A stretch of DNA of 64,000 nt, taken from the sequence record MK817115.1; one strand, 5' to 3'. Position numbers and translations under genes: made by a program. This document shows positions 39,617 through 57,214 of this stretch, in pieces. The notes below the pieces were generated by a model. That model worked only from the letters and a program-made list of their open reading frames with translations, was not told the origin of the DNA and searched no databases. Each line of letters begins with the position of its first letter. The first letter of the stretch is position 1.

Positions 39617-39847
39617 TTACATTATTCCTTCTATGCAACAACCAAGAATTACTTTTTTAACTTCAACAACTCGTACCAAATAGAATCCATTTGAAAAGTT
39701 AAAACTATACATTTGTACTAAGGCATCTGCTTCAGATTTCGCACGGATACATGATAGATAAATTTCACGTATATCACCATCTAACGATACTTGTTTCTCT
39801 GCATCGATGACAATAGAACGAATCTCAAAACGAACACCATAACTCAT
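39617..39847 (-). CDS. Hypothetical protein
   Basis: 76 aa, coupled. Confidence 0.65.
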   Translation of the reverse strand: MSYGVRFEIRSIVIDAEKQVSLDGDIREIYLSCIRAKSEADALVQMYSFNFSNGFYLVRVVEVKKVILGCCIEGIM

Positions 39848-40053
39848 TGAGTTTGTCCTACAATAAGCTTTGTGTTAGTATTACTATTGTAACACCACAT
39901 TTGTTCTTTATTAACTGTAATCCAAATATCTTTGTTTACTTGTTCGTATGTACTATCACGTACTGCTATGCATTGATTCATGGAATTCATTGGGGTTATT
40001 TGTATACCGGAATTAACAGAGAAAGCGACTACTAAAAAGATTACTGAATTCAT
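39844..40053 (-). CDS. Hypothetical protein
   Basis: 69 aa, AAGGA RBS. Confidence 0.65.
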   Translation of the reverse strand: MNSVIFLVVAFSVNSGIQITPMNSMNQCIAVRDSTYEQVNKDIWITVNKEQMWCYNSNTNTKLIVGQTQ

Positions 40054-40117
40054 TGGATATTCCTTAATGGTTAATCATCCATCTCTTCGAGATGTCTGTT
40101 CGCTTCTAATACTACGT

Positions 40118-40146
40118 ATTCTACGCGAATGATTAATAACTGTCAA
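40118..40146 (-). promoter_or_regulatory. sigma70 promoter
   Basis: TTGACA-17nt-TAGAAT. Confidence 0.7.
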
Positions 40147-40149
40147 GGA

Positions 40150-40635
40150 CTTTTAATATTGACGGGATTTGAGGAAGGGATTTTTCTTCCCCCCACAAGG
40201 AGGGAAATTTGACGCTGATGGTATCAGAGCTATTGCATTGAAGATTACTCATAACGAGTGCGAAAGCGGGTCATCCTGTTTCTCTCTACTTCAGTTTCAT
40301 ATGACGGTCTACACTTTTAAACATAGTGTATCTTCATTAAGTATCTATGCAATCAAATACTTAATGTGAGTACTCAAATTTTGGACGCAACTTTCCTGTA
40401 CAAAATTCGATAACTCTCCCTTAGATAATTCGTAAGGTGTTATCCTTATATGTCTATCAAGGAACCACCAGCTATCCTAACGTGGTTCTTTATACAGCCG
40501 CATTGCCGTGAGGGGTTCAAACTATGCCCACATCTAACGGGTTTCTTTTGCTGTTCGCACTGTCGGACTGCTCAACTGCCCTCTACGTTTTCGAGTGGAT
40601 CAGGTACATGAATATCATGCCAACAGAATTGTACA
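40150..40635 (-). ncRNA. Candidate large structured non-coding RNA (~480 nt)
   Basis: No credible ORF, higher G+C than neighbours, several hairpins, extended -10 (TGA-TATAAT) just upstream. Confidence 0.45.
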
Positions 40636-40670
40636 AGATAATTATATCACAAACTTTTACTTCATCCCAT

Positions 40671-40695
40671 AAAAAAAGGTTGGCATAAGCCAACC
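40671..40695 (-). terminator. Intrinsic terminator after the sigma gene
   Basis: GGTTGGC-TTAT-GCCAACC-T7. Confidence 0.8.
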
Positions 40696-40703
40696 CTTGT
40701 TCT

Positions 40704-41669
40704 TTAGAAATCTTCGTATTCGTACCCTTTTGCAAGTACTAACTTCTTAAGCTTTTGCATAGCTTCACTGTACTTTCGGTGTATTGATGAACGGGATTTA
40801 ACATATTTTCCATTATCATCAACAAAACCATTATCAGCAATCTCACGAAGCGTTTCAGGTTCATATTCACCTAGACCATGAACACGCTGGATAATCTCAC
40901 GTTCTTTAGTACTCAATTCGTTAGTTAGTTCATTGATAGCATAACGTAAAGGTGCACGGATACTATCAACATTGAGGTTAAAATCAGAAGCAGGTGAATG
41001 AATAATGTCACCTAATGTACCATCTGTAACACCGTCTAATGGTGCATCCAGTGAAGTGTATTCGCTTTGAAATAATAAACAATTATTAACATGCTGAATC
41101 TCAATCCCAGTACCCTCTGAGATTATTTCAGGTGTTGGGCGAACACCATGTTTACGCATATATTCCTGGCAGAATCTTTTTACTTTGATCTTATGAACAC
41201 TCATATAACGTGGGAAGTGTACCATATAGTTAGCGTCAGAACTTTCGTTATAAACTGTCATGTAAATACTAGAAGAAGCATAGGTAATGAACTTCACATT
41301 CTTATTAAGATCAAAGGTTTTTAGTGCTCTCATGAACCCCTCAACACCATATGAAATCTTATCTTCAAATGGGATATAACAAGTACATTTACTTGCTACA
41401 TCAATAATAAGTCCATAATTGTAACGAACTAACAGTTCAGTGTTTTTCTTTACATTGATACCAGCTTGAATATCACGAATTAGATCTTCATTGGAAACAT
41501 TTGGTGGTCGCTTAAGTGTAATATTATATTTGAAACTGCTTTGTACTTTACCTTCATTTTCATCTTTATCTTCAACGAAATCTAAGGCTTCTAGTGTGTT
41601 GACTTCTTCATTAGCAAAACATTCATCCAGAACTTCTTCGGCAATTGTATTTAAATCAAGCTTTTTCAC
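40704..41669 (-). CDS. sigma70-family RNA polymerase sigma factor (RpoD/RpoS-like regions 2-4, divergent)
   Basis: LVRYNYGLII..A; GFMRALKTFD...KFITYA; RPTPEII; SLDAPL; LSTKEREII..HGL..ETLREIA; GTG start with AGGAG. Confidence 0.88.
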   Translation of the reverse strand: MKKLDLNTIAEEVLDECFANEEVNTLEALDFVEDKDENEGKVQSSFKYNITLKRPPNVSNEDLIRDIQAGINVKKNTELLVRYNYGLIIDVASKCTCYIPFEDKISYGVEGFMRALKTFDLNKNVKFITYASSSIYMTVYNESSDANYMVHFPRYMSVHKIKVKRFCQEYMRKHGVRPTPEIISEGTGIEIQHVNNCLLFQSEYTSLDAPLDGVTDGTLGDIIHSPASDFNLNVDSIRAPLRYAINELTNELSTKEREIIQRVHGLGEYEPETLREIADNGFVDDNGKYVKSRSSIHRKYSEAMQKLKKLVLAKGYEYEDF

Positions 41670-52939: not shown

Positions 52940-53029
<90 letters not shown>

Positions 53030-53032
53030 AGA

Positions 53033-53142
<110 letters not shown>

Positions 53143-53194
53143 GCCAAGAGTCGGCATAGGTGCAGCACTACAAAGTTCTTCAAGCTGCTTGGTA

Positions 53195-53226
<32 letters not shown>

Positions 53227-53227
53227 T

Positions 53228-53284
<57 letters not shown>

Positions 53285-53286
53285 TA

Positions 53287-53837
<551 letters not shown>

Positions 53838-53846
53838 TAATACCCG

Positions 53847-54248
53847 CTAGTAGTTTAAGTCTGCGGCGTTGAATACACCAAGTGAAGTCTTACCACGTAG
53901 TTTAGGTGAAAGGACATACTTTGTCAATTTCTTTTTACCGTACCAGCGATTGAATTCGTCTTCAGTGACATATGGGTTCTGGAAATCGTATTCGCGTTTC
54001 TTATGCAGTTCTTTAGCACGTTCTGCAATCTTGGTTCGTTGGTCTTCTGGAATGTCGAATGTATTGTTACGTTCACACCATTCGTGCTCTAATGCACCCT
54101 GAAGAAACTGTTCGGTTTCTTTGACTAGAGTGATTTTAGTCAAGCCTTTTTCGATGTTCATATAATCATCGACGTATCCATTCCAAATAACAATCTCTGG
54201 ATTGCCGTCAATTTCTTGAAGCATTTTGATCAAGTCATTCTTTTTCAT
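53847..54248 (-). CDS. Hypothetical protein
   Basis: MKKNDLIKMLQEIDGNPEI. Confidence 0.72.
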   Translation of the reverse strand: MKKNDLIKMLQEIDGNPEIVIWNGYVDDYMNIEKGLTKITLVKETEQFLQGALEHEWCERNNTFDIPEDQRTKIAERAKELHKKREYDFQNPYVTEDEFNRWYGKKKLTKYVLSPKLRGKTSLGVFNAADLNY

Positions 54249-54256
54249 TTAAATTC

Positions 54257-54514
<258 letters not shown>

Positions 54515-54535
54515 TTATACCTCTCATTGTTTATG

Positions 54536-54607
<72 letters not shown>

Positions 54608-54611
54608 TAAT

Positions 54612-55219
<608 letters not shown>

Positions 55220-55270
55220 ATAAACCTCACTATACGTAACTTACACCATATACGTCTGATTGTGGAATTC

Positions 55271-55295
55271 ATTATATCAGTACTGAACTATTTAG

Positions 55296-55299
<4 letters not shown>
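55271..55299 (-). promoter_or_regulatory. Repeated promoter, copy 2
   Basis: TTGACT-AAATAGTTCAGTACTGA-TATAAT. Confidence 0.85.
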
Positions 55300-55709
<410 letters not shown>

Positions 55710-55718
55710 CTTTTTTTT

Positions 55719-55880
<162 letters not shown>

Positions 55881-55884
<4 letters not shown>

Positions 55885-56045
55885 AATCGTACCAGTAGTT
55901 CAATTAAGTACATTTCATATGCTGGATCGTTGATAAGTTTATCATACAGATGTGGCTCTGAAATGAATTCCCAATGATACTTTAGCCATCTACCGATACC
56001 CGAATATCTAAAATTAATGTCATTCATCCATTCTTCATGTGTCAT
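55881..56045 (-). CDS. MTHEEW microprotein (54 aa, not in ORF track)
   Basis: MTHEEWMNDINFRYSGIGRWLKYHW...ELLVRL*. Confidence 0.7.
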
Positions 56046-56206
56046 AATCGTACCATTATTTCAATAAAGAACCACGGATACACTTCATGATTCATAAGTT
56101 TATCGTATTCTGCTGGGTCTGATATGATTTCCCAATGATACTTTAGCCAACTACCGATACCCGAATATCTAAAATTAATGTCATTCATCCATTCTTCATG
56201 CGTCAT
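56042..56206 (-). CDS. MTHEEW microprotein (54 aa, not in ORF track)
   Basis: MTHEEWMNDINFRYSGIGSWLKYHW...EIMVRL*, AAGG RBS. Confidence 0.7.
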   Translation of the reverse strand: MTHEEWMNDINFRYSGIGSWLKYHWEIISDPAEYDKLMNHEVYPWFFIEIMVRL

Positions 56207-56229
56207 GGTTTTTAACCTTTAATTAAAAT

Positions 56230-56306
56230 TGGCCGAGGTAGAGGGACTTGAACCCCCAACCTAGAGATTAGAATTCTCTTGCACTATCCAATTGTGCTAT
56301 ACCCCG
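56230..56306 (-). tRNA. tRNA-Arg(UCU)
   Basis: CGGGGTA/TACCTCG-GCCA, A20, loop AT-TCT-AA. Confidence 0.9.
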
Positions 56307-56310
56307 TATT

Positions 56311-56426
<116 letters not shown>

Positions 56427-56459
56427 ATGTTATGTCCCATTATATAATGAATTAATGAT

Positions 56460-56678
56460 TTATGCAAGTGCTTTAGATACACCGACACCAATAATTCCAG
56501 TGATATCGATATGGATATTGGCAAGTTGATTACTATCATATGGGTTTGTTTCTGTAATAACCAATGTTGTATCATTGACTAAAACCACAGTACCTTTTAC
56601 ACGATAACCATGTAGTAGTACTTGAACCTCATCTTCAGGTTTTAATGATTGAATAACTTCAAATAAAGTTGTTTCCAT
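56460..56678 (-). CDS. Small beta-rich protein, possibly Sm/SH3-like
   Basis: Start METTLF; EVQVLL..V.GTVV.V.DTTLVI..HIDI..I.GV. Confidence 0.55.
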   Translation of the reverse strand: METTLFEVIQSLKPEDEVQVLLHGYRVKGTVVLVNDTTLVITETNPYDSNQLANIHIDITGIIGVGVSKALA

Positions 56679-56694
56679 TTTTTGTATTCCTTGT

Positions 56695-56877
56695 TTAGTT
56701 TTGATTATTTGACTTTCTAAATGCCAGTTCGCATATAAACCAGGGTTTTCTGGTATCCAAAACATATGACCTGAAAAGATTTTCATCTCTTAATATATCA
56801 TAATGTACCTGACGAATGCCATTCCCAAAGCAGTCATGTTCTTTATGCTGTTTGGACATCCATTCTTCGTGTGTCAT
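56695..56877 (-). CDS. MTHEEW microprotein
   Basis: MTHEEWMSKQHKEHDCFGNG...WFICELAFR. Confidence 0.7.
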   Translation of the reverse strand: MTHEEWMSKQHKEHDCFGNGIRQVHYDILRDENLFRSYVLDTRKPWFICELAFRKSNNQN

Positions 56878-56878
56878 T

Positions 56879-57214
<336 letters not shown>

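Follow-up and report, generated by a model that had tools for sequence, protein, structure and literature searches.

A multi-pseudoknotted RNA of RaK2-like jumbo phages, predicted from covariation and found as diverged positional copies and in bacterial integrative islands

We found that the gap downstream of the sigma gene in the jumbo coliphage phAPEC6 is, with a probability that we put at about nine in ten, itself a gene: it is predicted to specify a multi-pseudoknotted non-coding RNA of about 475 nt, read from the minus strand, at an extended -10 promoter, by the sigma-70 RNA polymerase of the host, and to be one of four ancient paralogs in this phage, with RaK2-like phages having three to five. 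The window that was analyzed, a 64-kb stretch of DNA, is nt 1-64000 of Escherichia phage vB_EcoM_phAPEC6 (MK817115.1; 100% identity, agreeing coordinates), an Asteriusvirus with a genome of 352.6 kb. Between the small gene gp065c (39844-40053, minus strand) on the left and the RpoD-like sigma gene gp066c (40704-41669, minus strand) on the right lie 650 nt without an annotated CDS (40054-40703), within which G+C amounts to 0.41-0.45 as against 0.30-0.37 in the flanks. The ORF-free, G+C-richer gap that a preliminary description of this DNA had singled out is therefore real, and its proposal of a novel structured non-coding RNA with its own transcription unit is supported by covariation, by G-U pairs on the minus strand, by a conserved TGnTATAAT box and by the lack of a match in Rfam.

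A pattern scan of IMG/VR, together with ten whole phage records, yielded 59 distinct full-length copies of the element, 53 of which, with mutual identities below 95%, form the non-redundant set. Our own scan of these 53 copies recovered 16 helices with 71 pairs, of which 53 are compensatory, as against none in five column shuffles, and most helices show three or four pair types. Covariation among homologs, the absence of which would have told against the RNA according to the preliminary description, is thus abundant, with the reservation that column shuffles leave the relatedness of the sequences uncontrolled and that R-scape was not applied. RNAalifold on the RNA-sense alignment (A2) gave 67 pairs, 45 of them compensatory, and conserved G-U pairs are numerous. 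Taken alone, the RNA has an unexceptional minimum free energy (z = -1.56; 8 of 100 shuffles fold equally well), and the evidence for the RNA is accordingly comparative, not thermodynamic. The helices were at first called with Watson-Crick pairs only, to favor neither strand; when those covarying helices that have at least four pairs are read on the plus strand, their non-Watson-Crick cells comprise 109 A-C and 26 G-U combinations, and, as an A-C cell of the plus strand corresponds to G-U on the minus strand, this wobble asymmetry places the RNA on the minus strand. The opposite reading, to which co-oriented BLAST matches and a -10-like box at the left end had pointed, was rejected on the wobble pairs and the TGnTATAAT box; folding energies did not separate the two strands.

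The structured body (about 475 nt; 40159-40634, minus strand, as are the helices and hairpins that follow) is delimited by a full-length profile match in all copies, by covariation and by the G-U strand signal, and several of its helices cross as pseudoknots. At the 5′ side, the long-range helix H1 (40561-40625; 40619-40625 with 40561-40566) has seven pairs, five of them compensatory. Inside H1 are a hairpin at the 5′ side (40607-40619), which is variable, and another covarying helix around 40580-40597 (A2 columns 112-117/127-132), while a small helix (40569-40571/40557-40559) wraps the 3′ arm of H1 in a pseudoknot-like fashion. Helix H3 (40494-40554; 40550-40554 with 40494-40498), which displays three compensatory pairs and no non-canonical cells, holds an inner, invariant CCGU/ACGG helix and is crossed by a short and hence tentative pseudoknot helix (40450-40503; 40501-40503 with 40450-40452; three pairs, two compensatory, no mismatches). 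It is followed by hairpin H5 (40462-40488; 40484-40488 with 40462-40466), whose 5-6 pairs are all compensatory, and by hairpin H6 (40433-40448; 40445-40448 with 40433-40436), which was recovered by RNAalifold and by our own scan and has a AUAGACAUAUAAGG-like and a CUAAGGGAG block beside it, both invariant and single-stranded. The most telling single element for the strand is hairpin H8 (40335-40366; 10-13 pairs), in which 10 of 10 pairs covary and for which the plus-strand reading gives 50 A-C against 5 G-U cells, fixing the strand as minus. Its loop (40347-40353) forms a long-range pseudoknot with 40232-40238 (spanning 40232-40353), with seven pairs, six of them compensatory, and a single non-canonical cell across the 53 copies. 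The adjoining pseudoknotted core (40239-40305) is made up of three interlocked helices of five pairs each (40301-40305/40270-40274, 40289-40293/40239-40243 and 40282-40286/40262-40266), with two to four compensatory pairs per helix, and includes a small hairpin (40257-40259/40247-40249).

Four helices had been proposed from the single sequence. Two of these (40335-40344/40357-40366 and 40462-40468/40482-40488) are strongly borne out by covariation; a third (40310-40315/40325-40330) exists in a shifted register, as 40309-40313/40328-40331, within hairpin H10 (40309-40331; RNAalifold and own scan); the fourth (40173-40177/40186-40190) lacks support, as other copies mostly have non-canonical combinations at its end pairs and no covariation was detected in the 53 copies.

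In RNA sense, the elements are ordered as the folded core, a CAUCGUCAG box, a hairpin with a U-run, the G-run hairpin, a purine-rich tract and an AAAUCnCGUCA box. The hairpin plus U-run ahead of the G-run is terminator-like and present in 26 of 53 copies; it is absent from the copy in the window (copy A). The G-run hairpin (40189-40204, minus strand) combines a C-rich arm with an invariant run of five to six G, recognized by its invariant G columns; its pairs vary on one side only (C-G to U-G), which fits an RNA on the minus strand. The purine-rich tract comes directly after it, and the near-invariant terminal CGUCA box lies at 40159-40166 (minus strand), with related CGUC(A/C) boxes at 40208-40215 and 40383-40388. 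A module of about 30 nt (UACAA..AG.UCCGUCCAAAAUUUGAG-like) occupies either of two alternative insertion points, or both as in phAPEC6 copy D (A2 columns about 370-410 and 540-580; 40370-40400 in the window), and behaves like a movable RNA sub-domain.

The transcription signals predicted around the RNA were all located by terminator, promoter and motif scans, which bears out the borders given for the gap in the preliminary description, namely the sigma terminator plus an extended -10 on one side and a TTGACA promoter on the other. The bidirectional terminator hairpin of the sigma gene (40675-40698), with a stem of 10 pairs and, on the minus strand, a T-run behind it, screens the promoter of the RNA against minus-strand transcription arriving from upstream. 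That promoter, P1, contains TGATATAAT at 40641-40649 (minus strand), which, with the preceding TG added, becomes the extended -10 element TGTGATATAAT at 40641-40651 (minus strand; hexamer 40646-40641); from spacing alone, the RNA is predicted to start at about 40634. Of the 53 copies, 51 have a TGnTATAAT box at the same (5′) end, and its distance from the first helix is short but varies. Across the 64-kb window this motif occurs 27 times as against 9.9 expected, 24 of the 27 being on the gene strand (minus), and, because it is enriched, oriented with the genes and in one case placed directly upstream of the tRNA cluster, we take it to be a real promoter class of phAPEC6. It looks like the early promoter class of this phage and could serve to map early transcription units. 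The cluster in question comprises seven tRNAs (Thr, Asn, Met, Ser-ACU, Arg, Ser and Gly; 52950-57192, minus strand), with a TGATATAAT box at 56411-56419 directly upstream of a tRNA-Ser (56311-56400); ARAGORN labels one tRNA with the anticodon ACT as Ser, and the Met and Ser genes are unusually long (90-92 nt).

Behind the RNA, a second promoter, P2, of the sigma-70 type (TTGACA-17-TAGAAT; 40118-40146, minus strand; promoter scan) serves gp065c, and a promoter-like module is found in the same place in most paralog groups. The leader of gp065c further features a hairpin with a GAAG loop (40080-40094, minus strand), recognized from the sequence and from comparison of 3′ flanks; the gp065c promoter and this hairpin occupy the region of copy A that corresponds to the one with the downstream motifs in other copies. 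In a survey of 21 flanks by eye, these motifs include inverted repeats with stems that differ wholly between paralog groups and loops that retain CGAAG-type motifs, and the hairpin at 40080-40094 may be, by inference only, the local counterpart of these covarying 3′-flank hairpins. A TTGACA-plus-hairpin module lies in the 3′ flank of two paralog groups, and three of the four occurrences of GAATTGAGTT in phage CBB are just downstream of copies; both were tried as general phage promoter motifs and rejected in that role, being element-specific. The terminator scan detected no intrinsic terminator between the RNA and gp065c in copy A, and the 3′ end of the RNA is undefined, there being no such terminator ahead of the gp065c promoter. 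In 14 of 53 copies, a terminator-like hairpin with a U-run directly follows the promoter, and the paralogs may therefore differ in regulation. In three paralog groups this is a strong hairpin with a U5-6 run only about 5-10 nt past the -10 box, so that transcripts from the element's own promoter would start in or just before a terminator; this layout recalls antitermination-controlled units.

The RNA does not belong to a family that we could recognize. At Rfam 15 gathering thresholds, the whole 64-kb window returned only tRNAs; with E-values up to 10, the best score in the gap was 19.7 bits against a threshold of 50 bits; and eight other members, representing all paralog groups and an island copy, had no match. 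The unmatched families include RNase P, tmRNA, group I/II introns, 6S, phi29 pRNA, GOLLD, ROOL, OLE, HEARO and raiA, and ARAGORN reported no tmRNA. The novelty raised at the outset has thus held up against Rfam for copy A and eight further members. We likewise found no earlier description of this RNA family: neither the element nor any replication origin is mentioned in the papers on phAPEC6, Sharanji and RaK2 or in a jumbo-phage review from 2026, the PA5oct paper does not mention the family, and the full-text literature on structured RNAs of jumbo phages yielded nothing.

Contigs from metatranscriptomes cover the element. In a wastewater metatranscriptome, a 299-nt contig (40278-40576; depth 9.7, no mismatches) is the only one in 5.5 kb to match cleanly; a metatranscriptome from fish gut includes a contig at 40282-40474; and in a second wastewater run two of three clean contigs are in the gap (40069-40219 and 40341-40491). 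In two RNA libraries from separate studies, contigs lie on the RNA, with only short, mismatched pieces from the surrounding 5.5 kb. This pattern fits an abundant, stable RNA, within the limits that these are assembled contigs without strand or end information and that carry-over of DNA is not excluded. Contig ends were considered as RNA ends and found unusable, as they coincide with paralog-shared blocks at which assemblies break.

The element is a multi-copy feature of the phages that have it. In phAPEC6, four copies are found in the same orientation at about 40, 150.9, 229.7 and 285.2 kb, the three beyond the window being placed in gaps of 600-1150 nt. Each of the distant jumbo phages that infect Serratia, Erwinia, Pectobacterium, Cronobacter, Yersinia, Salmonella, Klebsiella and Xanthomonas also has several matches of about 70% DNA identity, mostly where no annotation exists. 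The copy number is five in six genomes and four in phAPEC6 and EJP2, and profile searches recovered at least three in RaK2 and none in PA5oct. A functional link to the adjacent sigma gene, which the preliminary description had entertained, is not upheld: the other three phAPEC6 copies adjoin unrelated genes (Dam methylase, EndoVII and HNH endonuclease), and the sigma neighborhood is therefore mere local gene order. Copy C of phAPEC6, for its part, adjoins EndoVII and recombination-endonuclease genes. In a maximum-likelihood tree, copies cluster by genomic position across genera (SH-aLRT 93-100 for the positional groups), from which we infer that the paralogs, which are about 70% identical to one another, are older than the genera and have not been homogenized. 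In the five-copy genomes, the gaps between copies measure 44-86 kb in one tally and 52-86 kb in another, and the probability of a minimum gap this large under random placement is 0.002-0.02; as these genomes share gene order, the statistic amounts to one or two independent observations.

Beyond phages, copies are encountered rarely in bacterial chromosomes. A pattern scan of one genome per prokaryote species disclosed a full-length copy in Citrobacter amalonaticus P55, and BLAST revealed three carriers among 401 Enterobacteriaceae species genomes and two among 5,426 complete E. coli genomes; no copy was found in the plasmids searched. Each chromosomal cassette is full-length, including the 3′ boxes, and occurs once per island of about 10 kb. 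The Citrobacter amalonaticus P55 island (within 503500-523400), inserted between pilin genes and nadC, carries a serine integrase, the RNA, a cI-like repressor, a cro-like gene, an invertase and a GmrSD nuclease. The island in a second species combines the RNA with cI, cro, an invertase, a STAND NTPase and a tyrosine integrase, and that in a third has a serine recombinase, two ParB-like genes and the RNA. In E. coli LR-29-1 (NZ_AP027515.1, 3473-3484 kb), a tyrosine integrase beside ffs is accompanied by the RNA, hypothetical and DUF genes and an invertase, without an annotated cI. No replication or structural genes were seen in the islands. They form a family of mosaics, most of which share an integrase, an invertase-type recombinase and the RNA cassette, with a cI/cro pair in two of four; their variable cargo resembles anti-phage defense (e.g., GmrSD; nSTAND3 NTPase; dual-OB, DUF488 and DUF4326 genes; a ParB-like pair).

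The function of the RNA can only be inferred, and we lean, tentatively and at less than even odds, to a role in place, as the handle of an RNA-primed replication origin. A replication origin, which the preliminary description had named as the alternative to an RNA, remains live, and is compatible with an RNA gene and not its rival. We posit that the host-type extended -10 promoter would drive the folded transcript, that the fold, the G-run with the purine-rich tract and the A+T-rich, motif-bearing 3′ flank may keep the RNA on its template or return it there, and that a T4-type replisome could load at that place without a dedicated initiator protein, as at ColE1 RNA II or T4 ori(uvsY)/ori(34). 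We favor this reading because of the even spacing of about 55-85 kb, the retention of each positional copy and the capture of single complete cassettes by islands in which no replication genes were seen; the invariance of the G-run and CGUCA boxes and the element-specific motifs of the 3′ flank also speak for a position-dependent role.

ColE1 RNA II, which measures about 500-550 nt and is transcribed from a sigma-70 promoter of its own, offers a parallel: according to Masukata and Tomizawa, its folding reportedly matters, and its G-run is said to aid the persistent template hybrid that primes DNA synthesis. The phage cassette is of the same size class and likewise has a promoter and an invariant G-run near its 3′ part. 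However, it has no sequence or Rfam relation to RNA II, no counterpart of the antisense RNA I has been shown, its fold is far more elaborate and pseudoknotted, it is present in multiple copies per phage genome, and priming is inferred. A second parallel comes from T4, which has several origins, at each of which a promoter transcript gives rise to an R-loop without an initiator protein. RaK2-like phages are, we presume, usually described as having T4-like replication genes, and an initiator-free R-loop origin akin to ori(uvsY)/ori(34) would enable an island that lacks replication genes to be carried along. T4 origins differ from the phage cassettes: a promoter with a short unwinding element suffices for them, any one of them can be dispensed with, their conservation is poor and, to our knowledge, they have no large conserved RNA fold.

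Other observations weigh against an origin. The conservation of the RNA is of a grade known from ribozymes and RNPs and seems far beyond what a primer would apparently need, and the terminator-like hairpins after the promoter or before the G-run would limit transcription into the proposed priming zone. Nor was skew evidence of the kind that would liken the cassettes to T4 origins found: GC-skew has no step at copy A, and neither GC- nor AT-skew has one at the RaK2 copies at 191 and 280 kb, both of which are within a block of uniform transcription. In phages that replicate mainly by recombination, skew tests for origins only weakly, and there are no read-depth or experimental replication data.

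Nearly as likely as the origin handle is a stable RNA that acts in trans: it would leave its locus to bind a phage or host protein, as an RNP scaffold or sponge, or would form an RNA-only assembly like ROOL or GOLLD, with diverged gene copies supplying dosage and timing and the islands expressing the RNA as a decoy or for their own use. The very intricate fold, with its many invariant single-stranded blocks, is typical of RNAs that have tertiary structure or bind proteins; metatranscriptomes show the RNA but not its flanking genes; a host-type early promoter would allow the island copies to be expressed without a phage; and the leader terminators of some paralog groups suggest that copies differ in regulation. 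GOLLD, ROOL, OLE, raiA and HEARO, the functions of which are unknown or only recently found (10.1101/2024.12.08.627333), provide close likenesses. They share with the phAPEC6 RNA a length of more than 400 nt, many covarying helices, pseudoknots, phage association and abundance in RNA libraries, and differ from it in that none of them matches it in Rfam 15. We also know of none among them that forms evenly spaced multi-copy sets per genome or is cargo of integrase islands. ORF-free RNAs are on record in PA5oct, a phage of the same wider clade, in which ncRNA001-004 were defined by RNA-seq as unannotated, highly transcribed RNAs of 240-620 nt (PMC7318152). They have no similarity to the phAPEC6 RNA by eye, BLAST or profile, and hence give no expression evidence for its family; ncRNA002, the published 451-nt 'lncRNA', is an unrelated orphan RNA, preceded by a promoter-like TTTACA..TATAAA and ending in a hairpin with a T-run.

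A trans-acting RNA is the better explanation of fold and abundance, but not of the genomic pattern or of island capture. It leaves unexplained both the even spacing and the long retention, without homogenization, of five paralogs that are about 70% identical. A search for a protein shared by islands and phages, as a candidate partner of the RNA, also came up empty: no island protein matched phage DNA, for which RaK2 and PA5oct were available complete and the other phages as flanks only. Capture of cis sites by satellite-like islands is usual; we know of no precedent for their capturing a trans-acting RNA of the helper.

We consider it unlikely that the element acts in cis on transcription, its nascent RNA modifying its own polymerase (processive antitermination, as with HK022 put or EAR) or serving as a long regulatory leader. 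As in HK022 put, the folded RNA stands directly behind an early promoter and is then followed by terminators, with a terminator-like hairpin and U-run after the folded part in about half of the copies; a same-direction gene follows the RNA in four of five paralog groups, and in copy A no terminator intervenes before gp065c. Against this, behind the RNA of the 174-kb group and of phAPEC6 copy C comes a bidirectional terminator or a convergent gene, one paralog group lacks a same-direction downstream gene altogether, and two of the four islands that were examined have the RNA directed toward convergent genes. Most copies, moreover, have a separate promoter (P2) behind the RNA. There is no homology to the known processive-antitermination RNAs, and, as these measure 70-120 nt, the phage RNA is 4-7 times larger.

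Still less probable is an element that works as DNA, with the paired structure forming in single-stranded or cruciform DNA at a packaging, nicking or recombination site. In favor of such an element are helices that consist overwhelmingly of Watson-Crick pairs, in silico folding that is about as good for one strand as for the other, the even spacing and the repeated CGTCA boxes; the co-orientation of all copies within one genome adds only weak evidence, as 82% of the coding sequence of RaK2 shares that strand. The wobble pairs, however, are clearly strand-asymmetric, a conserved promoter reads into the element and contigs from RNA libraries cover it. The copies are also away from terminal-repeat boundaries (PMC5259590 for the CBB repeat), the expected place of packaging sites.

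A decayed coding gene, a match to which had been named among the findings that would refute the RNA, an unrecognized coding gene and chance hairpins can all be dismissed: short hypothetical ORFs are annotated over members in several records and give fragmentary tblastn hits, but all six frames hold 5-12 stops each, only 18% of indels are divisible by three, substitutions lack three-base periodicity with variability flat across codon positions, the tblastn hits jump between frames, and the covariation is massive. Since most copies have stops in all frames and the tblastn matches switch frames, the annotated short ORFs (e.g., gp307 at MK817115.1 229513-229770, Kaldavass CDS0100-0102 and several 'hypothetical protein' calls) are probably spurious.

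Few large RNAs with an intricate fold are known, and up to now every new class of them has been a pointer to new biology. The phage RNA is present in the cultured coliphages phAPEC6, 121Q, PBECO4 and Sharanji, which are able to grow on laboratory E. coli, and its predicted promoter and start, together with four to five diverged natural variants, offer a ready covariation set for structural work. Its spacing, ancient positional copies and capture by islands lead to testable hypotheses on where the replication of a 350-kb phage starts and on satellites of jumbo phages. In the most far-reaching of these, which we regard as rather doubtful in its entirety, the cassettes would be the initiator-free, RNA-primed origins of RaK2-like phages, fired by a folded transcript, and the islands would be the first satellites of jumbo phages. 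If this is true, the islands would amplify themselves and their defense cargo by borrowing the replisome of the infecting phage through a captured origin RNA.
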